From Obrimoposthia wandeli (lineage: Eukaryota): a stretch of 64,000 bases of DNA. Positions 1 to 18,137 of the stretch are shown here, piece after piece. A program made the position numbers and the translations under genes. Position 1 is the first letter of the stretch, and each line of letters begins with the position of its first letter. The notes under the pieces were generated by a model. It made no database searches, was not told the origin of the DNA, and saw nothing but the letters and a program-made list of their open reading frames with translations. Location of the stretch: contig CDROCS010005513.1 in the NCBI GenBank assembly GCA_977020255.1, positions 1-64,000 of the forward strand, written 5' to 3'.

Positions 1-270
1 CCACGCGAATATTTAAATAAGCTTTCTGGCTGGCGTCAACGCTCAAACTGGGCACAGCAGAATACCTTCGAATCCATTCCAGGTTTCATGGCCGCAGTTA
101 TCATTGCTCATCAAATGGGAGGTAATCAAGACAACATTGATATGTTAGCGATAAGCTACATTGTTATTCGAATTGTTTATGGGGCTTTATACATCGCTGA
201 TATTGCACTAATGAGAACACTTGTATGGGCTCTTGGTGTGGCGTGTATTCTAGGGTTGTTCTTTACTTAA
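1..270 (+). CDS. MAPEG-family membrane protein (5' end outside window)
   Basis: Frame is open from base 1: PREYLNKLSGWRQRSNWAQQNTFESIPGFMAAVIIA. This fits the MAPEG R-A-x-x-A-x-x-N-x-x-E pattern and is followed by hydrophobic helices. Confidence 0.75.
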   Translation, partial: PREYLNKLSGWRQRSNWAQQNTFESIPGFMAAVIIAHQMGGNQDNIDMLAISYIVIRIVYGALYIADIALMRTLVWALGVACILGLFFT

Positions 271-308: not shown

Positions 309-341
309 TTAACACCGTATGCTTTTTTGATACGGTGTTAA
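309..341. terminator. Hairpin between convergent genes (likely terminator)
   Basis: Perfect 12-bp inverted repeat TTAACACCGTAT / ATACGGTGTTAA with a 9-nt loop, lying between two convergent stop codons. Confidence 0.55.
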
Positions 342-378: not shown

Positions 379-2136
379 TTAATAAGCAATTCGCTTATTA
401 TTTTGCAAGTGTGTATAACTCACATTATCACTCACCGAGCCGCCACCCATAGTGCCACAACCTAAAGTCCAAGATAAATTCAGACCATTATCAGCACCAA
501 TACAGCCTTGAGTACCTGCAGTCGAAACCAATACACGGCTCACCTGCACGACCGCGCTGAAAGCACGTACTCTGTTTTTATCATTGGTATGGATAATCGC
601 AGTATGGCCCTTCCCTTCTAACTCTAAAATTTCATACGCATGGTCTAAAGCCATCTTGTCACTTTCATTACGAATAAATGACAATACCGGCGCTAACTTC
701 TCACGCAATAAAATGGAAGAAAAATCATAAGGCTGCACTTCAGCAAGTATCAACTTAATATCATAATTACGTCCGATCCCTGCTGCTGCACAAATATCCG
801 CCGCAGACTGGCCAATAAATTCAGCTTGCAAACCTTTACCATTAGCAAAAATATTAGCCAGTAGCAATTCGCGCTCAGCCTCAGTTAATACTACGGCACC
901 ATAGGCTTGCATATTGAACAAAAAATTATCAACAATTGCACAATCGACTACCAGATTATTTTCACTGCCACAGACAACACCGTTATCAAACGCCTTACTG
1001 TTGATTACTTTTCTTGCAGCATCTTCAACATTGCAATCATCACAAATCCAAACAGGGGCATTACCTTTCCCCACACCAATAGCGGGCGTACCCGAAGAAT
1101 ACGCACTCTTCACCATAGAAGGACCACCCGTCGCTAGAATCATACTAATGTCGTCATGAGTCATGTACGCATTCGTTACTTTTCGATTCGCCGCAAGCTC
1201 AGGTGTTTGCACTAAATTTTCTGGAGCCCCGAATCGTTTCAATACTTGGCGAATAATATCAACCGTTTTCTCTCCCACCAAACGGCCCTTACGATGAGAA
1301 CTAATCACGATGGCATTACGTGATTTTAAGCTAATCAATGTTTTAAATACGGTCGTCTCTACAGGGTTAGTAATCGGAATCATGCCGAATACAACACCGA
1401 TCGGCATTGAAACTCTTTCAATGCCATTAGCTTCCAATTCAATAGCGCCATTACCTGGTTTATTAACCAAAGAGTCTGCGACATCCAAAGAGCCTAATTT
1501 TATTTTTAAAATTTTATGCTCAACAACTCCCATTCCCGATTCTTGTTGCGTTAGCTCAGCAAGATCTTTCGCTTGAGCATAAATTGCTTTTGCAATTTCG
1601 GTGATAATTTCATCAACCGTGTTTTCGGGCCAAGATAAAAATTCTTCATGTGCCAATCTGGCCAATGTCATTTGTTTATCAACCGAAGGAATTCTGGCTA
1701 TTTTTAAAGCAGCTTGTTGGTTTAAAGGCTGAGATTTTCGTACACGTTGAATAAGCGATGCATTGAATAATTTTAGAAATTCCTGGTAAGCCAGCTCATC
1801 GATTTCTTGTAATTCTTCCAACTTGCTAGCGGATAAAAATAGCACTTCTGCCGCTTCAGTCACCTTAACCGTCATGGCTCTTGGCTCATCTGCAATAAGG
1901 CTCATTGCCCCCAAAAGATCACCTTTACCATAATACTCCAAGGCTATATCAGCACTGACATCAGCATCATAATACTGAGTGACTAATTGCCCACTCAATA
2001 TATAAAAACAACCATCTGGTTGATCACTTTGCTTAAACAAAAACTCTCCCAATTGAAAACTTTTTACCAAACAATATTTCTTTAAACGCTCAACTTCATT
2101 CCTTGGGAATGATACTGCGGTTGGGACATTCATCAC
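379..2136 (-). CDS. Cyclic-nucleotide-binding domain fused to CoA-acylating aldehyde dehydrogenase (AdhE N-terminal / EutE type)
   Basis: aa ~1-135 have cNMP-domain hallmarks (LFKQSDQPDGCFYILSG; GDLLGAMSLIADEPRAMTV). The rest follows the AdhE ALDH domain (ESGMG, PIGVVFGMIPITNP, ATGGPSMVKSAYSSGTPAIGVG, catalytic FDNGVVCGSE, TLGCGTMGG). No Fe-ADH domain follows. Confidence 0.85.
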   Translation of the reverse strand: MMNVPTAVSFPRNEVERLKKYCLVKSFQLGEFLFKQSDQPDGCFYILSGQLVTQYYDADVSADIALEYYGKGDLLGAMSLIADEPRAMTVKVTEAAEVLFLSASKLEELQEIDELAYQEFLKLFNASLIQRVRKSQPLNQQAALKIARIPSVDKQMTLARLAHEEFLSWPENTVDEIITEIAKAIYAQAKDLAELTQQESGMGVVEHKILKIKLGSLDVADSLVNKPGNGAIELEANGIERVSMPIGVVFGMIPITNPVETTVFKTLISLKSRNAIVISSHRKGRLVGEKTVDIIRQVLKRFGAPENLVQTPELAANRKVTNAYMTHDDISMILATGGPSMVKSAYSSGTPAIGVGKGNAPVWICDDCNVEDAARKVINSKAFDNGVVCGSENNLVVDCAIVDNFLFNMQAYGAVVLTEAERELLLANIFANGKGLQAEFIGQSAADICAAAGIGRNYDIKLILAEVQPYDFSSILLREKLAPVLSFIRNESDKMALDHAYEILELEGKGHTAIIHTNDKNRVRAFSAVVQVSRVLVSTAGTQGCIGADNGLNLSWTLGCGTMGGGSVSDNVSYTHLQNNKRIAY

Positions 2137-2149
2137 ATCTTCCTTAAAT

Positions 2150-2167
2150 TAAGCATAAATTTGCTTA
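2150..2167. promoter_or_regulatory. Palindromic candidate operator in divergent promoter region
   Basis: TAAGCA-TAAATT-TGCTTA, in the 172-bp gap between the cNMP-ALDH gene and ORF 2309. Confidence 0.35.
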
Positions 2168-2308
2168 TATGATTTTCGAATAACGTTGCATTCTTATATA
2201 AGAATACCTACAATCCTTACACAAAATGCGCCAGAACGGAATGCTTATTAACTACTCAGGGAGAGTCTTAAGGCGTAATAACAAGAGAGTCACCACAAGG
2301 GATAGGTT

Positions 2309-3532
2309 TTGGATAAATTACGTGCAAAAGCAGTAGAAAGTATTCTAGGCATATACTCACCGTTTTATATTAAAGATATGAAACTCGATGCTGAACATGA
2401 ACTTTTTACCATTCAGCTAGATGAAATAAACAATAAAAATAAATCAATAACATCGCGCTTTAGAAGCACTTCAAAACACATCACTTATTGCTGGCAACAT
2501 GTAAAACTGGGTCGCTTTAATACCCAAATAATTTTCAAAAGCTCAGAATCAAATTTTAATCGTTTAACAAGACTAGTCTGCCCTTCTTTTTTAGGATTAG
2601 CAGAACAAAAATACACCAAGCAAGCCGAAGAACTTATTTTATTTGCTCATGGAAAAAAAATAAGTGCCGATATAATTTCGACCTTAACAGGTTTGCAAGC
2701 TGACGATATTAAACGCTTCATCCTTGATACTGAAAGCAACCAAATAACTCAAACTACCAGCAATTTATTGCCATTAGAAACGGATGCTATTTGGATTAAG
2801 ATCATTAAACGGGAATTGCCGTTAAAAACCAGTCAAACCCCTTTAAGAATGCTACTTCACAAATTAGAGCTGAGCGAAATAAACAACAGTGATAGCTCTG
2901 TATTACAAGAGTCCGTTGCAACATTACGTGCCTTCTTCATTAAAAACAAAGCCAACCTTACCTCAGAATATCAGCAAATTGGGGCAAAAAAAGAAGAAGT
3001 ACAAAGCCCTCTAGAAAAACCTGTTACACAAAAAGCAGGGGCTAGCAGACTCACACCCGCACACCCAGTATGGGACAACATTTTAACTGAGAAATTTTCG
3101 TTGATGTCATCAAACTTGGCATTTAACCTCTACATATCTCGTTTAAAGAATCTTTATAACAAAGACTTATCCAGCTCAGAAAAACGTGACATTGTTATTG
3201 AGCTAATGAAATATCTAAAGAAAAATATCGCCAGCTTACGTAATGAACTTATTGCTATTAAGAAAATTGCAGAGACGATTGATAGCGAGCCCAAAGACAA
3301 TAACATTCCAGATAAGTCAGACGCTATTTGGCAAGACATACTTAATGAACGCGTAGAAATTAAAAGCAGCAAGCTGAATCTAAATTTATTGCTGGTAAAA
3401 CTTAAGAGCCAAACGGCCAAAGGTTTTGAGCAAGAATCATCAGAAGAACTTCATCAGTTTTTTAGTGACAACTATAGAAGCTTGAAACATGAAATAGAAA
3501 GCTTATCAATTTGCAAAGCTGAAGCCGTTTAA
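2309..3532 (+). CDS. Hypothetical protein: ISL3-transposase-like N-terminal/HTH region plus three ~70-aa internal repeats
   Basis: TTG start after AAGGGATAGG. LGIYSPFYIKDMKLD, CWQHVKLGRFNTQI and KYTKQAEELILFAHGKKISADIISTLTGLQADDIKRFI parallel the ISL3 N-terminus. Repeats are P...DAIW..I / P..HPVW..I / P...DAIW..I. No DDE domain. Confidence 0.7.
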   Translation: MDKLRAKAVESILGIYSPFYIKDMKLDAEHELFTIQLDEINNKNKSITSRFRSTSKHITYCWQHVKLGRFNTQIIFKSSESNFNRLTRLVCPSFLGLAEQKYTKQAEELILFAHGKKISADIISTLTGLQADDIKRFILDTESNQITQTTSNLLPLETDAIWIKIIKRELPLKTSQTPLRMLLHKLELSEINNSDSSVLQESVATLRAFFIKNKANLTSEYQQIGAKKEEVQSPLEKPVTQKAGASRLTPAHPVWDNILTEKFSLMSSNLAFNLYISRLKNLYNKDLSSSEKRDIVIELMKYLKKNIASLRNELIAIKKIAETIDSEPKDNNIPDKSDAIWQDILNERVEIKSSKLNLNLLLVKLKSQTAKGFEQESSEELHQFFSDNYRSLKHEIESLSICKAEAV

Positions 3533-3562
3533 TCACATACGTGGATTATAGAAAGGAATACC

Positions 3563-4564
3563 ATGAGTAACGTACAAATTACATCAGCATTAGTCGACCT
3601 AGAGACCTTAGTCGATAAGATTAATCAGCGAGAGTTTTTGATCATTGCCGCTGACGAGAAGATATTAAAACAACTGCCATCAGGTAACTGGATTGCAGGT
3701 ACTATTCCATACTTCATGGGTCAAGAAGGCGGAGAAATCAGCCAAGATAAAGCGTTTGTAAATACAATTGAAGGCCTTAATCTTAGCAACCAACCGCGTA
3801 TCATGCCATATGATATAAACTCAATTAAAAACATCGCCCAAGATGCTCCTGAAAATGGTTTCACCATTACCATTTTACCCGCGGGTAGCGCAATTCATGC
3901 GGAATACGCAGAGAACGCTCCGGGCTATGACAACATGTTTTTCTCACCAATTATTGGTTGGGTAGCCGGAAGTCACTTAGAACAAAACGATGCTCAACCA
4001 CAAGTCGGGTTTGGTACTGCAAACATGTTAATGACTGATAAAGCCATTGCAATGCATGTTCCTTTGTCTGATAGCCAATTTGCCAACATCAACATTGTGA
4101 ACTTATTTGAACAAGGCAACGGGCCAAAAATCAGCTTCAATGAAACTGGATTTTCAGCGAATGACTGCATGATCGATGGTAAAGCCGCTAAGTTATCTGA
4201 ATATGTACAAAATAATAATATCGATACCCGCCTACCTTTAGTCGCGGATTATAATGGTGTGAATATCAACGTATCGATTAAAGAATTACTCAGTGGTTCT
4301 GTTGATTTCTACGCGCCTATTTTTAAGAATGTTCAATATCAATTCGCCAACCCCGTTGCGGATTATGTGAGCGAGCTGAATAAATCCATCGCAAGCCAGC
4401 AGATTCCAGAAAACTGTTTCTCCTTTAACTGTATATTAAACTTTTTATATGCGGATTTAGAAAATAAAAAGACTGCTGAACTAACCGGTCCTTTTACTTT
4501 TGGTGAAATTGCTTATCAGCTACTGAACCAAACACTCGTCTACTTGAGCATTGAAAAAGCTTAG
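3563..4564 (+). CDS. FIST-like stand-alone sensor protein (probably DUF6976 family)
   Basis: LPSGNWIAGTIPYFMGQEGG near the N-terminus. C-terminal FSFNCILN and GPFTFGEIAYQLLNQTLVYL resemble FIST_C motifs. RBS AAAGGA, 30 bp after the preceding gene. Confidence 0.7.
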   Translation: MSNVQITSALVDLETLVDKINQREFLIIAADEKILKQLPSGNWIAGTIPYFMGQEGGEISQDKAFVNTIEGLNLSNQPRIMPYDINSIKNIAQDAPENGFTITILPAGSAIHAEYAENAPGYDNMFFSPIIGWVAGSHLEQNDAQPQVGFGTANMLMTDKAIAMHVPLSDSQFANINIVNLFEQGNGPKISFNETGFSANDCMIDGKAAKLSEYVQNNNIDTRLPLVADYNGVNINVSIKELLSGSVDFYAPIFKNVQYQFANPVADYVSELNKSIASQQIPENCFSFNCILNFLYADLENKKTAELTGPFTFGEIAYQLLNQTLVYLSIEKA

Positions 4565-4579
4565 ACTATTAGTAAGAGT

Positions 4580-5035
4580 CTAAACTTTCGCCGCTCGCAT
4601 CCAGCTGATTTGTGCATACAAGATCACGGCTGCAGCGGCTGTCCCCATCGGAAAAAGCGGCAATAATAAAATACCATAAACCCACACAATCGCCTGCTGC
4701 CATAAACCTGCCTGTGCTATCGAATACTTTACCAATAAATTAAAAATAATACTGGGAATCGTGATCGTAAAAAATATAGCAGAAAACCCTAACAAGAAAT
4801 GCATATTCTCTGACATACCCTCACGGGGTGCCGCCGCATTAAAGATACCCAACATAACCCCCATAAACAGTGCAATAAAAACGGCAAAGATAGTTATTAC
4901 ATTAACGGCAATACAAGCAGCATTGACCTTTTCCTGTAAAGACTCGGCTTCTTGTTGAGCATGCTGAGCAGACATACTTGAGGATACATCTGAACTCACA
5001 TCTGAACTCACATTTAAAGGCATCGCGATAACCAT
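4580..5035 (-). CDS. Small inner-membrane protein, about 3 TM helices; start uncertain
   Basis: Three hydrophobic segments after a Ser-rich N-terminus that contains a duplicated 12-bp unit (SSDV). Confidence 0.55.
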   Translation of the reverse strand: MVIAMPLNVSSDVSSDVSSSMSAQHAQQEAESLQEKVNAACIAVNVITIFAVFIALFMGVMLGIFNAAAPREGMSENMHFLLGFSAIFFTITIPSIIFNLLVKYSIAQAGLWQQAIVWVYGILLLPLFPMGTAAAAVILYAQISWMRAAKV

Positions 5036-5195: not shown

Positions 5196-7286
<2,091 letters not shown>

Positions 7287-8586: not shown

Positions 8587-9198
8587 TTATTTGATCTCAC
8601 CAATAGGCGCAACAACCTTTCCGTACACTTCATTCATTACTTGCGCTAGCGCAGCATAAATTGCCGATAGGCCACAGAAAATACCTTCAATACCTGCAAT
8701 CTGTTTAATCGTACTGCTACCGGTATAATCACCCAAAGCCAATAAGAAGAACAGCAGGGTTAACGAAGCAAAAACGACCTGTAAAGCGCGGTTGAGTCTT
8801 AACGTACAAACAAATAAGACAGCGGTAAATAATCCCCACATAATCAAATATGCCACCATAGCCATCTGATCAGGAGCCTCAGCCAACCCCATTTTTGGCA
8901 TAACCACTAGCGCCACAAGGGTTAGCCAGAAAAAACCATAAGAAGTAAACGCTGTACAAGCAAAGGTATTATTCTTTTTCCATTCCATTAGACCCGCAAT
9001 AATCTGAGCGCAGCCTCCGTAAAAAATCCCCATTGCCAAAATCATAGAGCCTAACTCAAACAGACCTGCGTTATGAAGATTCAGCAAAACCGTTGTCATA
9101 CCAAATCCCATTAACCCTAGAGGAGCTGGATTCGCGGTAGTATCTTCTAGCTTGATACTGTTTAACTGCCCTTCTAGTTGCGTAACGCTTATATTCAC
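8587..9198 (-). CDS. satP: Acetate/succinate uptake transporter (GPR1/FUN34/YaaH family)
   Basis: Signature [24 protein letters not shown]; six TM segments. Confidence 0.92.
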
Positions 9199-9487: not shown

Positions 9488-10378
9488 TTGATATTGGCAA
9501 AAATAAAGCGCAGGCCCTTAATTATCACACTGCATATTGTTCTATTTGCCTTTATTGCAATTAGCATTTATACGCACACAGATTCTATTAATGCCGTTAA
9601 AGTTCCCCCAAATTCTCTTTCACAATGGTATAAGCCTGAAAACAAACGTCAGGTTTGGCTGCATAACATGTTCAAACTTCGCAGAGAAATGCAGGCTGTT
9701 GAATTTTACGCTCAAAATCAAGATTCCATTCTATTGGACAAGTGGGCAAAAAGGTTAAATACGCATTATTTTGAAATTGCCAAAATGGTTCCCGAGTGGG
9801 AAGGCAAGTTATCAAGCTCTCTATTGGCCGATTTAAATGAGCAGGTTAAACACAGTAAATTTAATGAAATCCCAAAAACACTCGAAGACTTAAGTCAAAA
9901 TTGCCAAAGCTGCCACACCGATTACCAAGCAACAACAGCGGCACTATATCGCGCCCCAGACTTTGAAAAAATCACAGTCAAAGTAAAAAACAATCAGGGC
10001 ACAAGTATTCCATATACCCAACACATGGACTTACTGAGTAAACAAGTTAACCAGATTAAAATTGCGATTGAGGATGACAAAATAGCGCTAGCGCAATCAT
10101 CACTCGCTGAGCTAAAAGAAGGAATGCTGGCTCAAGGTGAAACCTGCTCTAACTGCCATAAGAACGAGATTGAAACGTACCCCAGCCAAGCCATGACCCA
10201 AACCCTTGGCGAGCTAGAGCAAAGCCTAGCAACAGGTTCAACCACAGATCAAGGTCGTGCATTAGGCACCTTGGCCGTGCAAGCCTGCGCACGCTGCCAT
10301 GGCACCCACCGCATGAGTTATAACGTCCGTAAACAACTGACGGACAAAATGGATTGGCTGCAACTGATTAAACATTAG
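9488..10378 (+). CDS. Exported triheme c-type cytochrome (helical, cytochrome c'-like repeats)
   Basis: N-terminal basic/hydrophobic signal or anchor; three CxxCH motifs (CQSCH, CSNCH, CARCH). Confidence 0.8.
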   Translation: MILAKIKRRPLIITLHIVLFAFIAISIYTHTDSINAVKVPPNSLSQWYKPENKRQVWLHNMFKLRREMQAVEFYAQNQDSILLDKWAKRLNTHYFEIAKMVPEWEGKLSSSLLADLNEQVKHSKFNEIPKTLEDLSQNCQSCHTDYQATTAALYRAPDFEKITVKVKNNQGTSIPYTQHMDLLSKQVNQIKIAIEDDKIALAQSSLAELKEGMLAQGETCSNCHKNEIETYPSQAMTQTLGELEQSLATGSTTDQGRALGTLAVQACARCHGTHRMSYNVRKQLTDKMDWLQLIKH

Positions 10379-11852
10379 CCCGAACGTGACGGCTAAAACT
10401 ATCAACAGCAATATTCAATAATGCGGCAATAACAATCAAGAATAAGGCTCGGTCAAAGCGCATATCTTCAAAGGCCGAGTCAATGTAAAAACCTAACGTA
10501 GTAATGCCTAAAATACCTAAAATGGCACTTTCACGAATAATTACTTCCCAACGATACAAGAGCAAACTTAGAAAGTGCGGGTAAATTCGAGGTGTCACTT
10601 CATAAAAATAATGATTAACCCCCCTTCCCGCGTCAGCCCTATATGCAATCTGTTCACTATGGCGCATCAATAAATAGCTAATCAGTCCGGCATTATGCAA
10701 AGCCAAAGCAAGTACCGCAGGTATTCCTGAAGGTCCGAAGATTAGTAAAAATACAAAGGCGAAAATTATTTCAGGAACTGAACGTAAAACCAATAAGGTG
10801 GTTCTACCAATACCCCGCATCAGGGAAAAGGGTTTTGGAAAAAAGCTTTTACTGGCCCAAGGATAAAACAATAAAACAAGCAACCCTGTAAGCACCAGTG
10901 CCAGCTGAGCTAATAACAAGGTATCCCAGAGGGCGGGTAAAGCAACATCGAATAATTGGTGCTGATACCAAATAATCGAAGCCGCCATATCGCCATTAAG
11001 CAGGGCTTTTGGCCAAATATCTTGCGTTAAAAATTGCACTAATGAACTGCCATAAACAGCAGGGGAATCAGGTAGTGCTATAAACGCTAATACTAAATAA
11101 ATCGGAATTAATATATACGTCGGTATTATCTTAGTAAAAAACCACCAACGAATTGTAGCGATTAAAATAAAGAAGGAAAATAACAAGCCTGCGGCTTCAT
11201 TATACTGGCCTTGTTTAAACGCAGTTTCCAAGTAGAAGCCTAAAGTCGGTAAACCAATAAAACCCAAAATAGTACTGGAGCGTAAGGCGCACTCAAAACG
11301 ATAACGGGTATAACTCACCATCTGTGGCCACGCTTGTGGTAGCCAAGTATAAACATACTGGCTTAAGCGACTTGTTTTAGTCGACAGTGTTGAGTGGGGT
11401 ACTGTGCTTTGCTGCTCGATGATTTCGGCAAACATCTTGGCAAAGATACCAGTAAAGGGCACCAGTATCGCGAGCACACCCGTTGTAGCGGATAGACCAT
11501 AGACCTGCATAAAAATCAGACCCCAGAACAACTCATGTACCGCTCGAATCGAGGCTGAAAAGATACGAACTATTCGAGAGTGAAAAACGAGAGCGAGTAA
11601 CAGTCCTAAAAAGGCAGCGCCTGATACCGCAATGAAAGCGAAAGCAACCGTAATGATTAAGCTATTAGCGAGTATCGAAAATTCAGGAAAGCTAGGCTGA
11701 ATAATCCCCAGCCCCATGCGTGCCAGCTCGTTCCACGGTTCGACCTGATAAATGACTAGGTCAGAAAATGGAATACACAGCAAAGCAACGACGATAAAAG
11801 CGAGGGAAAGATTACGCGAGCTATTTATATTTTTTTTAATATTAAACGTCAT
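10368..11852 (-). CDS. PhnE/PtxC-like ABC permease (two fused permease modules)
   Basis: Two EAA-like loops (RYRFECALRSSTILGFIGLPTLG and YRWEVIIRESAILGILGITTLG) and many TM helices. Confidence 0.85.
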   Translation of the reverse strand: MTFNIKKNINSSRNLSLAFIVVALLCIPFSDLVIYQVEPWNELARMGLGIIQPSFPEFSILANSLIITVAFAFIAVSGAAFLGLLLALVFHSRIVRIFSASIRAVHELFWGLIFMQVYGLSATTGVLAILVPFTGIFAKMFAEIIEQQSTVPHSTLSTKTSRLSQYVYTWLPQAWPQMVSYTRYRFECALRSSTILGFIGLPTLGFYLETAFKQGQYNEAAGLLFSFFILIATIRWWFFTKIIPTYILIPIYLVLAFIALPDSPAVYGSSLVQFLTQDIWPKALLNGDMAASIIWYQHQLFDVALPALWDTLLLAQLALVLTGLLVLLFYPWASKSFFPKPFSLMRGIGRTTLLVLRSVPEIIFAFVFLLIFGPSGIPAVLALALHNAGLISYLLMRHSEQIAYRADAGRGVNHYFYEVTPRIYPHFLSLLLYRWEVIIRESAILGILGITTLGFYIDSAFEDMRFDRALFLIVIAALLNIAVDSFSRHVRANV

Positions 11853-13517: not shown

Positions 13518-14690
13518 TTAAGTCAAGGCTCTTAAATAAGTTTCAACTTCAATGGCATTACCACGAAATACAATACGATCTTTGCGCTGTTCTAATAAAT
13601 AATCATATTGAGGGTCATAATATTCACTCAACAGAACTCGAATCCATTCACGGTGTAAACTATTGTCCCCCGCTTCATGGGCTACAAGCGCATTATCCAA
13701 CATAATCGTTAACTCCTGATGGCGTACACCACCCAATCGCTTACGAATATTGAACATCGATTTTTTCAATTCCTCAGAAAAAAGTTCAAATGCGGTCAAA
13801 TCCCCGTCATAAGGTTTTCCTTCAAGGCTAATAACTTTTGAATCGTCAGCACTAAACTCTTCCCACTCGGCCAATTTTTGTAAAATATAATTACTAAAAG
13901 AATGCTCAACGCGAGTTTCTAAATCTGCTTCCACAACAACCATGGGCGATTCATGCATAGCACTTCGCAGCTTAGTGGGCAAAGCGGAACGACCAATCAA
14001 ATGACTCTCGTCTTCTAATAAAATGGGTCTATTAGGCGCTTTATGATGCAAGCGCAAAAATTCAATCGACAGTTTATTTTCAAAATCAATCTGACTGGGC
14101 TGACCCGCAGCGCGTTTACCGAAAGCGCTGCCTCGGTGGTTGGCCAAACCTTCTAAATCAACGGCATTATCGAATTTTAATAATAAATCAGTTTTCGCAG
14201 CGCCCGTCTGGCCCGCAACAATATAAAATTTTTCTTTGCGCTGCGAGTCGGCCGCATAATCACAAATACTTTCTAGGCGGTCGATTAAAAAACGACGCAT
14301 CGCTTTATAGCCGCCCTTCACCAATGGATAATCATAGCCCGCTTCAGCTAACCAAGCTTGAGTAGTATGCGAGCGTAAGCCACCACGAAAACAATATAAA
14401 TAACCGTTCGGATTTTGCTTAACAAATTCAAGCCAGAGCGCCATACGCTCGTCTTTGGTTTCACCGGAGACTAAACGATGACCTAACTTAATCGCCGCTT
14501 CTTGGCCATCACGTTTATAAGACGTGCCGACTTTGGCGCGTTCAATGTCGGTCATCAAAGGTAAACTTTTCACATGGGGAAAAGCGCCTTTTTTAAACTC
14601 AATCGGTGCACGGGTATCAAACATCGGTGTATCAGTTAAAAATAATGCTTCGTAGTCATCAGTATCCTGCCTTTTATTAGCAGTCATCAA
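13518..14690 (-). CDS. mnmH: tRNA 2-selenouridine synthase
   Basis: Rhodanese domain DTRAPIEF and [10 protein letters not shown]-loop [27 protein letters not shown]. Overlaps selD by 4 bp. Confidence 0.93.
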
Positions 14691-15856: not shown

Positions 15857-16492
15857 CTAATGACTATAAGATAACAGCAGCTTATCAATGCCCTTCTTAG
15901 GGGTCTTTTCGAGCTTTTTAATTAGCTCAAAGGGGATATCAAATACACCATAGCGCTCACCGATATCTTCGAGCATTTTCATCCATACCTTAGCCGTCAT
16001 TTCACTGTCGTATAATGCGCGGTGAAATCCACCTGAACTTTCGATGTTAGCAAAACGCACCAGTTCACCTAATTTATGACTGTGCGCATTTTGAAAAATA
16101 CGTCTTGAGAGTAATAACGAGCAAGAGAAATCACCCGCATAGTCGCGCCCAATCCGTTCAAGTTCAGCATCCAAAAAGCGTTTATCAAACGATGCATTAT
16201 GGGCAATTAAATTATCATCACCGATAAAGTCTGCGAAGCGATCCATCACAATAGCGCACGAATCAGCCTCTACCAGCATGTCATTACTGATGCCAGTATA
16301 GTCTTCTATAAAAGCACTGACTCGCTGGCCTGGGTTCATTAACTCTTGGAAGCGTTCGGTAATTTCGCCATTAACCAAACGTACGGCACCGATTTCAATC
16401 GCTCGATCACCTATATTGGGTGATAAGCCCGTCGTCTCGAAATCGAGAATCACCAAGCTGTCTGCTCGATGAACTTTACCTATTTCACTCAT
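15857..16492 (-). CDS. DEDDh 3'-5' exonuclease (DNA Pol III epsilon-like)
   Basis: ExoI LDFETTG, ExoII HNASFD, ExoIII HRALYD. ATG at 16492 overlaps the upstream stop. Confidence 0.88.
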
Positions 16493-18137
16493 GTTTTTCA
16501 CCTGCCTGCAGCGCATCATTTAAATGCACTTTTTTAGTATTGGGTAAGTTAGCAACGTTACGCATAACCTCAATACCCTCTACCGCATAATTCTCAATCA
16601 TCTCGCCAGTCACTTCATAAGGTGAACCTAACGATAAACCCAACTTACCTTTGGTTAACTTAATGCCTTGCAAAATATCCGACCCACCCACCAAGCTCAG
16701 GGGTAAAATAACGTCACCTGGGCGTAAATAAGCCTGTAAATATTTAGGGTTAAAATATTTCAAGGTAATATCGCCATTATCTTCGACATAAGAACGAGAA
16801 CCTTCAGGAAAGATTAAAAATGGCTCGTGCATCACCTGCTTAAATAAATCGTAATCTTCTTTATCAAGTTCCGCAGCCACTTCAGCCGCATCACAAGCCA
16901 CCAAGTATTCGATCAACTCCTTTTGCTCTTCTGCACTTAAAACTTCGTCCAGCCAAGATAAGCTGTTATTTAATAAGGCCTGTTCGGCTTGCATATTTTG
17001 GTAGTTCAAAATCAACTGCATAAAATCGCGATAGCTAAACTGCTCGATTAATTTTAAGCCTACATTTGGCATCTTGATTAAAAACTGCGTCCGACGGGCA
17101 CTTTTTTGCAAGGCAGCTGCTAAACCATCTTCATTGACTTTAGTCGTGCGCTGCGACGGCAAGGTTAAGAACATATTGCCGACATTACTAGCACCACTTT
17201 TCAAGAATAAACTCGAAAACATGCGCGGGCCCACAACGGTATTATTATTTTCTGCGAGATTATCAAACCCCAGGCGACGCAATGCACTGCGCACAAAATA
17301 AGGTCCTAAATAGCCCTCATGATGGCCAATAATAAAAACCCGATGACCATGAGCCTTAAATACCGAGGCCTCATACAAATGGCGAACACTATGACTGGAT
17401 TCAACTTGTCTTTTAGAATCATCTCTAAACGACGTTTGCTTACCATCGTCATCCACTAAAATAATATCTTGAATATAGCGAGCTTCTAAAACTCCGAATA
17501 ATTTATGCCATAACGCTCTGTCGGGTAGAACCGGGGATAATGATCGCTTGAATGAGAATGGCGTCGCCAATAAGCGCTCTACAGGGCTTTTATTGAATTC
17601 CTTAAAATAGGAATGCTGCAGCATCTGGTTTTTACGTGCTACAAGCTTATCAACAACATCGGGAAAGTGTTGCTTAAAATCCAATCCTTGCTGAGTCGCA
17701 TGACCAATTAATTCATCCATGTGCTGAACAAGCTTGTCATTATATGGAGATTGCTTAAAGGCATAATATTTAGTGCGAATAAAATCAACCATACCTTTAA
17801 AGTTAGTCACCACACTCGCAGTATGTAGGCTTTGCTTAATAATTTCGGGCGCTGGCACTTTCATTAACAAGTTCACAAAGCCACGCTTTAGCACGTCAAC
17901 CCAGCCCGCTAACTTAGAAAAAATCGCCATCGAAAAAACGGTGATTTTAGAGAGCACATCACGCTTATCAATCGACGCTAGAGACTTCTCTAAACGGCCT
18001 TTATTCTGCTGTAAAAACTGCAGTGCCTCAGCCGGAGTCAAGGTTTTCTTTTTAAAACCTTGTATTAAAGGATCATCATTAGCCTGTTCATCGACTAACT
18101 TATCGCCTGATAGCTTTTCATCAGTATCTTTTGTCAT
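16485..18137 (-). CDS. Divergent acyltransferase-fold protein (plastid/chlamydial GPAT-like), 550 aa
   Basis: [36 protein letters not shown] and [10 protein letters not shown] follow the block order of glycerolipid acyltransferases. Confidence 0.55.

Follow-up and report, generated by a model that had tools for sequence, protein, structure and literature searches.

Here we analyse a three-gene module at positions 379 to 4,564 of a 64,000-nucleotide window, that is, the whole stretch of DNA studied (contig CDROCS010005513.1 of assembly GCA_977020255.1, deposited as Obrimoposthia wandeli). The window contains no N and its DNA is that of an Oleispira-like genome, the closest genome locus being an Oleispira metagenome-assembled genome (MAG) whose DUF6976 protein is 92% identical to that of the window. 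On the whole, the analysis shows that genes 2 and 3 of the module form an undescribed two-gene cassette, in which a protein carrying unnamed helical repeats (R units) is encoded directly upstream of a DUF6976 protein, and which is inherited as a pair in all sampled loci. The three-gene module, with an aldehyde dehydrogenase (ALDH) as its third member, is built on this older R-DUF6976 cassette. The three genes are as follows.

379..2133, minus strand: gene 1, CAP/cNMP-ALDH protein (cNMP, cyclic nucleotide monophosphate); 584 residues from the ATG at 2133, with an open reading frame (ORF) extending over 379-2136
2309..3532, plus strand: gene 2 (ORF 2309), R-repeat protein; 407 residues, TTG start
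3563..4564, plus strand: gene 3, DUF6976 protein; 333 residues, own Shine-Dalgarno sequence

Genes 2 and 3, both on the plus strand, are separated by 30 bp, and the cassette is single-copy within the window.

The R-DUF6976 pair across genomes

The pairing was followed in a sample of 80 genome loci with a DUF6976 gene, of which the genome collection holds at least 538. An R-family gene is located directly upstream of DUF6976, on the same strand, in 79 of the 79 loci with upstream DNA, and these loci represent several phyla. Searched over all ORFs of the 80 loci, the profile of the ORF 2309 family gives exactly 79 matches, every one 5' of DUF6976. The gap between the two genes is mostly from -19 to about +60 nt, reaching +135 in locus L010 and +179 in L030, and the genes often overlap.

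The R unit itself is an unnamed helical unit of about 72 residues with an invariant Trp and a Leu/Ile-Pro ... Pro-x-Trp ... Phe-Phe pattern. It occurs bare, as a protein of 72-114 residues, in seven loci from Delta-type bacteria, Holophagae, Spirochaetota, Ignavibacteriales and others, and the R profile was built from these stand-alone proteins. Behind a head resembling the N-terminus of ISL3 transposases, one R unit is found in Beta- and many Gammaproteobacteria and three in Oceanospirillaceae, Saccharospirillaceae and Cellvibrionaceae, while a head with four units is a further form of the upstream protein. A library-wide search with the R profile gives 1018 clusters (50% identity) of proteins that have 74-864 residues and carry 1-6 units. 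In two R representatives a GrpE domain replaces the ISL3 head, and DUF6976 follows one of them; this is an unexpected link of the cassette to a DnaK co-chaperone. Because the pairing holds for the bare, ISL3-head and GrpE forms alike, it is R that is coupled to DUF6976, and the N-terminal domain can be exchanged. Such universal coupling fits the suggestion in the original prediction that gene 3 signals through the repeats of gene 2.

Two further observations concern the same genes. At L090:6001-8249, GrpE is fused to two R units and DUF6976 follows with a 13-nt overlap. A candidate natural R-DUF6976 fusion (P0358) was set aside as anecdotal: it is a fragment in which the stop codon of L028 is read through, and no gene record exists for it.

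The link to aldehyde dehydrogenase

The enzyme beside the cassette belongs to different families in different genera. By BLAST, a CAP-ALDH of the cNMP-EutE type, as in the window, is divergent from the cassette in 11 loci from Oleispira, Bermanella, Oceaniserpentilla, Reinekea and one MAG. The reverse test, starting from distant CAP-ALDHs (45-52% identity), finds in three of three cases a divergent Pfam-less protein of about 404-414 residues together with DUF6976, amid unrelated flanks. The three genes thus stand together in other genera with nothing else shared around them, as expected from the original prediction, which had proposed conservation of the neighbourhood as a test of the module. 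For Cellvibrionaceae, the divergent gene in 16 loci instead encodes an acetylating acetaldehyde dehydrogenase of the DmpF/MhpF type, of a different fold family from CAP-EutE; it scores above the cut-off of NF006157 and just below that of TIGR03215, the DmpG aldolase is not adjacent, and the outer flanks vary. An acetaldehyde dehydrogenase of a third kind, ExaC-like and just under the equivalog cut-off, lies directly downstream on the same strand in L030, and an ExaC-type enzyme above the cut-off is found about 2 kb upstream of the cassette in L060.

Overall, an ALDH gene adjoins 28 of the 29 three-repeat loci with readable flanks and is divergent in 27 of them. A maximum-likelihood tree built on DUF6976 groups the three-repeat cassettes, which come from marine gammaproteobacteria, in a single clade (support 100/100), and the ALDH-type labels cluster on this tree far more than in shuffles. 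Inside the Cellvibrionaceae subclade (98/90) the partner is now of the DmpF, now of the CAP-EutE (Thalassocella) and now of the ExaC type. These comparisons show that the dehydrogenase family has been replaced several times while the cassette stayed, and we consider this the strongest evidence of a functional link. Since the enzyme is swapped and the cassette kept, the function of the cassette would attach to acetaldehyde dehydrogenase activity and not to one particular gene.

Several other genes are also seen near the cassette. Proteins with a CAP/cNMP-type domain are its immediate neighbour in 18 of the 80 loci, in at least four architectures, with only five more elsewhere in the loci. These architectures are the ALDH fusion, a cNMP-CBS-DUF294 protein in five Pseudomonadaceae loci (four from Pseudomonas sp. 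and one from P. aestuarii), a regulator of the CRP type (L062 and L036) and, in L007, a fusion of a CPA1 antiporter with a cNMP domain. The last one, a Na+/H+ antiporter with its cNMP-type domain at the C-terminus (L007:9362-11812, minus strand), is convergent to DUF6976, and this Bermanella locus carries the CAP-ALDH as well. A protein of 281-378 residues, with an N-terminus of about 240 residues of no recognised family and a C-terminal response-regulator receiver domain, is located directly 3' of DUF6976 in four-repeat loci (L056:10855-11928 and L075) and close to it in Hydrogenophaga (L035:6347-7483, L046 and L072). The Hydrogenophaga cassettes are neighboured by genes for alanine racemase and MFS transporters, those of Methyloversatilis by NYN/OST-HTH and mobile-element genes. 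At L085:1-8000 (Methyloversatilis universalis), the cassette has resolvase, KilA-N, RNase H, AAA_25 and site-specific recombinase genes as its neighbours, surroundings that look like an integrated mobile element. A link to acetate permease in Pseudomonas, at first expected, was dropped, the neighbouring transporter being of the BCCT family.

The three proteins, their spacer and the surroundings

The original prediction had described gene 2 as a regulator with repeats and a transposase-derived helix-turn-helix (HTH), gene 3 as a FIST-like sensor and gene 1 as an aldehyde dehydrogenase with an allosteric cNMP domain. An HTH, of ISL3 type by its fold, and three repeats of about 70 residues are indeed found in gene 2, and the FIST fold is recovered in gene 3 by structure comparison. 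The cNMP domain of gene 1 is also present, but without a canonical phosphate-binding cassette. The following features lie within genes 1 and 2.

970..972, minus strand: predicted catalytic cysteine codon; Cys389 counted from the GTG (2136), Cys388 from the ATG (2133)
1807..2064, minus strand: CAP/cNMP-like beta-barrel domain; residues 25-110, numbered from the GTG at 2136; non-canonical phosphate-binding cassette
2309..2752, plus strand: N-terminal region of gene 2; residues 1-148, a sheet of four strands where ISL3 transposases have the zinc ribbon, then the HTH
2615..2749, plus strand: three-helix HTH; residues 103-147
2768..2971, plus strand: R unit 1; residues 154-221, E 6e-8 against the stand-alone R profile
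3059..3259, plus strand: R unit 2; residues 251-317, E 2e-3 (weak), register confirmed by the family alignment
3305..3502, plus strand: R unit 3; residues 333-398, E 2e-4, with family alignment

Gene 1 matches PF00027 (cNMP_binding) with 55.3 bits, against a gathering score of 27.5, and PF00171 (Aldedh) with 80 bits; both domains are present in 120 of its 120 best homologues. Because these homologues have 584 residues, we place the start at the ATG at 2133. The nearest NCBIfam models are those of the N-half of AdhE and of EutE acetylating acetaldehyde dehydrogenases, although gene 1 stays below the equivalog cut-offs (372.8 against 620.1 for EutE TIGR02518, 402.4 against 951 for AdhE NF010378). 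Its ALDH part aligns to residues 12-447 of E. coli AdhE (E 5e-80), with FDNGVVCGSE placed on the catalytic Cys motif FDNGVICASE, and the product has no alcohol dehydrogenase half. We therefore predict from the alignments that gene 1 encodes a CoA-acylating aldehyde dehydrogenase of the AdhE-N/EutE type with a CAP/cNMP-type effector domain. The phosphate-binding cassette of this domain, aligned on those of PKG and PKA, reads Gly-Ala for Gly-Glu and Arg-Ala for Arg-Thr/Ser, the cassette Arg is mostly absent among the CAP-ALDH fusion homologues, and across them this domain has a much higher rate of evolution than the enzyme part. The CAP-type domain is thus real as judged from its sequence, while a cyclic-nucleotide ligand is doubtful, since the glutamate of Gly-Glu is lost and the Arg is not conserved in the family. 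In the PADLOC and PHROG scans the domain resembles the cNMP domains of Pycsar effectors. No paper on a cNMP-domain acetaldehyde dehydrogenase fusion was found in the literature search.

Searches of Pfam, NCBIfam, PADLOC and PHROG give no family for gene 2. Its structure model, built on 30 homologues with a predicted local distance difference test (pLDDT) value of 79, places a sheet, a three-helix HTH and helical repeats in this order. For residues 1-148, the matches in AlphaFold DB are N-termini of ISL3 transposases, with probability 1.0, and those in ESM Atlas are fragments of Zn_ribbon_ISL3/HTH_Tnp_ISL3, with a template modelling (TM) score, normalised by the hit, of 0.60 over 132 residues. 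By VIA-align only the HTH is matched; it superposes at 0.9-2.5 A on the DNA-bound HTHs of Tn3 resolvase and of the transposases Tc3 and IstA, and on the regulators Lrp and LuxR. Against the PDB, Foldseek gives no match for ORF 2309, and the comparisons show no solved structural relative of the R unit. The DDE_Tnp_ISL3 catalytic domain is not matched, residues 150-407 being R repeats, and the protein has no CxxC pairs, so that the zinc cysteines are lost and the sheet is kept. Relatives preserve more of the ancestral signature: the five-repeat protein P0289 keeps CxxC and scores just below threshold on the ISL3 N-terminal models (PF13542, E 6e-6; PF14690, E 1e-4), and the sequence signal of HTH_Tnp_ISL3 is seen in relatives only, at 26.0 bits against the Pfam cut-off of 27.4. 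Taken together, the N-terminus is modelled as a DNA-binding region derived from ISL3 transposases with loss of the zinc cysteines and of the DDE domain, and its DNA binding is a prediction.

Gene 3 matches PF22396 (DUF6976) with E 1e-129, and this is its only match at E up to 0.1; the Pfam models FIST and FIST_C give none. Its structure model (pLDDT 76) finds FIST proteins, as well as sensor modules at the N-terminus of histidine kinases and PAS proteins, in AlphaFold DB (E 1e-15 to 1e-9), with TM scores of 0.6-0.73 over residues 1-333 for FIST-named modules. In the PDB, FBXO22 ranks first by its FIST domain, with Z 11.2 over 221 residues, and the next neighbours, chorismatase (Z 7.7) and barbiturase (Z 5.6), are well separated. 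DUF6976 is thus, in its modelled structure, a two-lobed FIST fold. The family has more than 4000 sequence clusters in one search, and no paper on it was found in the literature search. Its highly conserved polar residues include N180, D221, N236, C290, N293, E315 and Q319, and His112 and His138 are 90-97% conserved; a heme role for these two histidines is speculation.

Between genes 1 and 2 lies a spacer with two palindromes.

2134..2308, no strand: divergent intergenic region; 175 bp from the ATG at 2133, 172 bp (2137-2308) from the GTG at 2136
2150..2167, no strand: perfect inverted repeat; arm TAAGCA, 6-bp spacer, arm TGCTTA; 5 nt from the ALDH ribosome-binding site
2190..2205, no strand: perfect 16-bp palindrome ATTCTTATATAAGAAT; identical in L001, near-identical in L002 and L003

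Regulators and their targets are typically divergent pairs with a common spacer. The region 2134-2308 presumably holds both promoters and any operator, and its mean column identity over four Oleispira genomes is 84%. It contains four palindromes with arms of at least 6, against 0.59 expected (P about 0.02), and one perfect 16-bp palindrome would occur in it by chance with P about 0.035. In the Oleispira genomes, the palindrome at 2190-2205 and a block with the consensus TTACACAAAATGCGCCAAAACGGAATG are better kept than the repeat at 2150-2167. The former is flanked by the hexamers TTGCAT and TACAAT 17 nt apart, which by eye are a candidate promoter of ORF 2309, while promoter and terminator scans make no call within the spacer. 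Rfam gives nothing credible on the window region or on a 600-bp Cellvibrio spacer. The Cellvibrio spacer between the DmpF-type and R genes (L011:8104-8707, with equivalents in L012-L024) is 570-700 bp long, has several blocks conserved between species, among them about 70 nt directly 5' of the R start, and gives no Rfam match.

The module is bounded on both sides.

309..341, no strand: hairpin; -15.3 kcal/mol, z -4.1, stem of 12-13 bp; 0 of 200 shuffles fold equally well
4580..5035, minus strand: small membrane-protein ORF, convergent; right boundary, outside the module, conserved solely within Oleispira

The hairpin sits between the end of a MAPEG-family gene (270) and the ALDH stop (379), and is probably a bidirectional terminator marking the left boundary. 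Hairpin, convergent ORF, palindrome, genes and spacings were all found where the original prediction had placed them. As for the neighbouring genes, the C-terminal part of the MAPEG-family membrane protein occupies 1-270 (plus strand), cut by the window edge. At 5196-7265 (minus strand) there is a 689-residue fusion of Old-Yellow-Enzyme and pyridine-nucleotide-disulphide oxidoreductase, similar to FadH/2,4-dienoyl-CoA reductase, which stands beside the module in Oleispira alone; inside it, at 6672-6718 (plus strand), Rfam places the histone 3' stem-loop with a score below threshold (25 against 34 bits), most likely by chance. A GPR1/FUN34/YaaH gene for a SatP-type acetate/succinate channel lies about 4 kb from the module (8587-9198, minus strand), and may be a further hint of two-carbon (C2) metabolism. 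Three long minus-strand ORFs, at 10368-11852, 13518-14690 and 16485-18137 (494, 390 and 550 residues), match no Pfam family at E 1e-5. A phosphonate-type ABC transporter lies between the first and the second of them. The third, which was checked as a DUF294-type protein and is not one, overlaps the start of an RNase_T exonuclease gene.

Proposed mechanism, rival explanations and significance

We propose that the cassette is a split, ligand-responsive transcription regulator of aldehyde oxidation, a proposal whose chances we judge evenly balanced. DUF6976 would bind a small molecule tied to aldehyde or C2 metabolism and would dock on the R units. This would alter how the R protein occupies the common intergenic promoter region by its HTH, and the occupancy would set the expression of the dehydrogenase, probably together with that of the cassette itself. 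On the Oleispira enzyme the CAP-like domain would add a second control at the protein level, with a ligand that is probably neither cAMP nor cGMP.

A number of observations weigh against this proposal. Most other lineages (Betaproteobacteria, Pseudomonas and non-proteobacterial phyla) have the cassette without an ALDH neighbour, as does L010, the only one of the 29 three-repeat loci in this situation. A DNA-binding domain is missing from the stand-alone R proteins, so that R and DUF6976 cannot ancestrally have served transcription control as such. No operator common to genera was found when TAAGC/GCTTA was counted (28 against 19.7 ± 4.7 expected), and 12-mers from the window spacer searched across genera do no better than shuffles. 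The palindrome at 2150-2167, which the original prediction had singled out, is present but is kept only partly in three other Oleispira genomes. Moreover, in 80 sequences from several phyla, 62 of the 333 positions of DUF6976 reach an identity of 97% or more, and gene 3 still has 44% identity to its most distant sampled relative; such conservation is unusual for a sensor and would fit an enzyme or a cofactor-binding protein too.

A broader reading, possible rather than probable in our view, takes R and DUF6976 as an old autonomous two-protein system of several phyla. R would be a portable docking module, repeatedly fused to different outputs (an ISL3 head with 1-6 R units, GrpE, or none), the FIST-fold protein would be a cofactor-bearing or catalytic sensor of a reactive aldehyde or gas, and the trio would be a specialisation for acetaldehyde removal. 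If true, this would establish two protein families as new, and with them a new principle of signalling, where an array of repeats on the head of a domesticated transposase reads out the copy number of the sensor.

It is also conceivable, though we think it unlikely, that DUF6976 is an enzyme or a cofactor-bearing (e.g. heme) protein of the dehydrogenase pathway, which makes, carries or detoxifies the aldehyde, with R as its docking, assembly or chaperone partner and the HTH fusion autoregulating the operon by way of free R. The very high conservation of DUF6976, polar residues included, speaks for it, as do the enzymes of the same fold class that follow FBXO22 among the structural neighbours, the chaperone link suggested by the GrpE-R fusion, and the stand-alone R-DUF6976 pairs that lie amid housekeeping genes with no output partner. 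The DmpF-type partner also lacks its usual aldolase; a DmpG-type aldolase normally supplies acetaldehyde to this enzyme. Yet the best and clearly separated structural match of DUF6976 is a FIST domain, and we know of no FIST protein that is an enzyme. No catalytic motif was recognised in DUF6976, pathway neighbours are absent in most lineages, and FIST is listed only as a putative nitric oxide (NO) or heme sensor (PMC8846402). To inherited gene order, by which cassette and dehydrogenase would be neighbours without a functional link, we give a small probability: the adjacency is limited to related gammaproteobacterial families and no operator is shared among genera, but the flanking genes are wholly different between genera with the trio intact, and passive synteny does not predict the swap, at the same position, to non-homologous or distant enzymes of the same activity. 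A slightly smaller one goes to the CAP/cNMP-type domain as the real partner, with R and DUF6976 acting in a relay with CAP-domain proteins and ALDH as one of several outputs. The 18 loci with such an immediate neighbour are in its favour; against it, 16 DmpF-type partners and the ExaC-type partners have no CAP domain, and the phosphate-binding cassettes are degenerate and differ among themselves. It counts as a rival because the independent events are few, only about five. Very improbable, finally, is a selfish or defence-type cassette, toxin-antitoxin-like or an ISL3 remnant, in which the upstream protein neutralises the downstream one. Such a cassette would agree with the small helical upstream partner, the overlapping stop and start codons, the optional DNA-binding domain at the N-terminus and its transposase origin, and with the one locus beside resolvase, KilA-N and recombinase genes. 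However, neither the R protein nor DUF6976 has a PADLOC or PHROG match, the cassette is single-copy in the window with the DDE domain absent, its position is stable within genera and its inheritance looks vertical, and DUF6976 is far more conserved than typical toxins.

Returning to the split regulator, its closest known likeness is NosP-NahK, where a stand-alone FIST-fold protein (about 330-400 residues) is likewise encoded beside an output-bearing partner. The partner here is, however, not a histidine kinase but R repeats with an ISL3-type HTH, with GrpE or with nothing, and DUF6976 has no Pfam FIST match; heme and NO binding belong to NosP. FIST is described as a putative NO or heme sensor of unknown mechanism (review PMC8846402). 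ISL3 transposases (Zn_ribbon_ISL3, HTH_Tnp_ISL3 and DDE_Tnp_ISL3) have the same N-terminal fold as residues 1-148 of ORF 2309, with a weak sequence signature in its relatives, whereas ORF 2309 lacks the DDE domain and the zinc cysteines, is single-copy, keeps its position within genera and has R repeats in its C-terminal half. The ALDH domain of gene 1 can be aligned over its full length with EutE and the N-half of AdhE and keeps the catalytic Cys motif, but gene 1 differs from them in its N-terminal CAP/cNMP domain, its missing alcohol dehydrogenase half and its scores below the equivalog cut-offs. As with divergent one-component regulators (e.g. LysR-type), regulator and presumed target face each other across a short palindrome-bearing spacer; unlike there, the presumed sensing and DNA binding are on two proteins, the presumed coupling is via a repeated docking unit, and neither cassette protein is in a named regulator family. 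The Cellvibrionaceae partner matches the DmpF/MhpF models of DmpF/MhpF-DmpG pairs, yet it is paired with the R-DUF6976 cassette instead of an adjacent DmpG. No named system with such an architecture was found in the literature, PADLOC or PHROG searches, in agreement with the original prediction, which knew of none.

The novelty would lie in a new repeat that connects FIST-based sensing with the head of a domesticated transposase. The module gives a first functional context for DUF6976 and for the R repeat family, which has no existing model and counts about 1000 clusters at 50% identity. It would also be a clear bacterial case of the DNA-binding head of a transposase being reused in a cellular protein, and the exchange of the partner for unrelated enzymes that share its activity is, as comparative evidence, unusually strong. 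Members of Cellvibrionaceae may be genetically tractable. The sensor-like pair is tied to acetaldehyde or acyl-CoA aldehyde metabolism both in the hydrocarbon-degrading Oleispira and in the polysaccharide-degrading Cellvibrionaceae, and the module points to a new kind of control of aldehyde metabolism.

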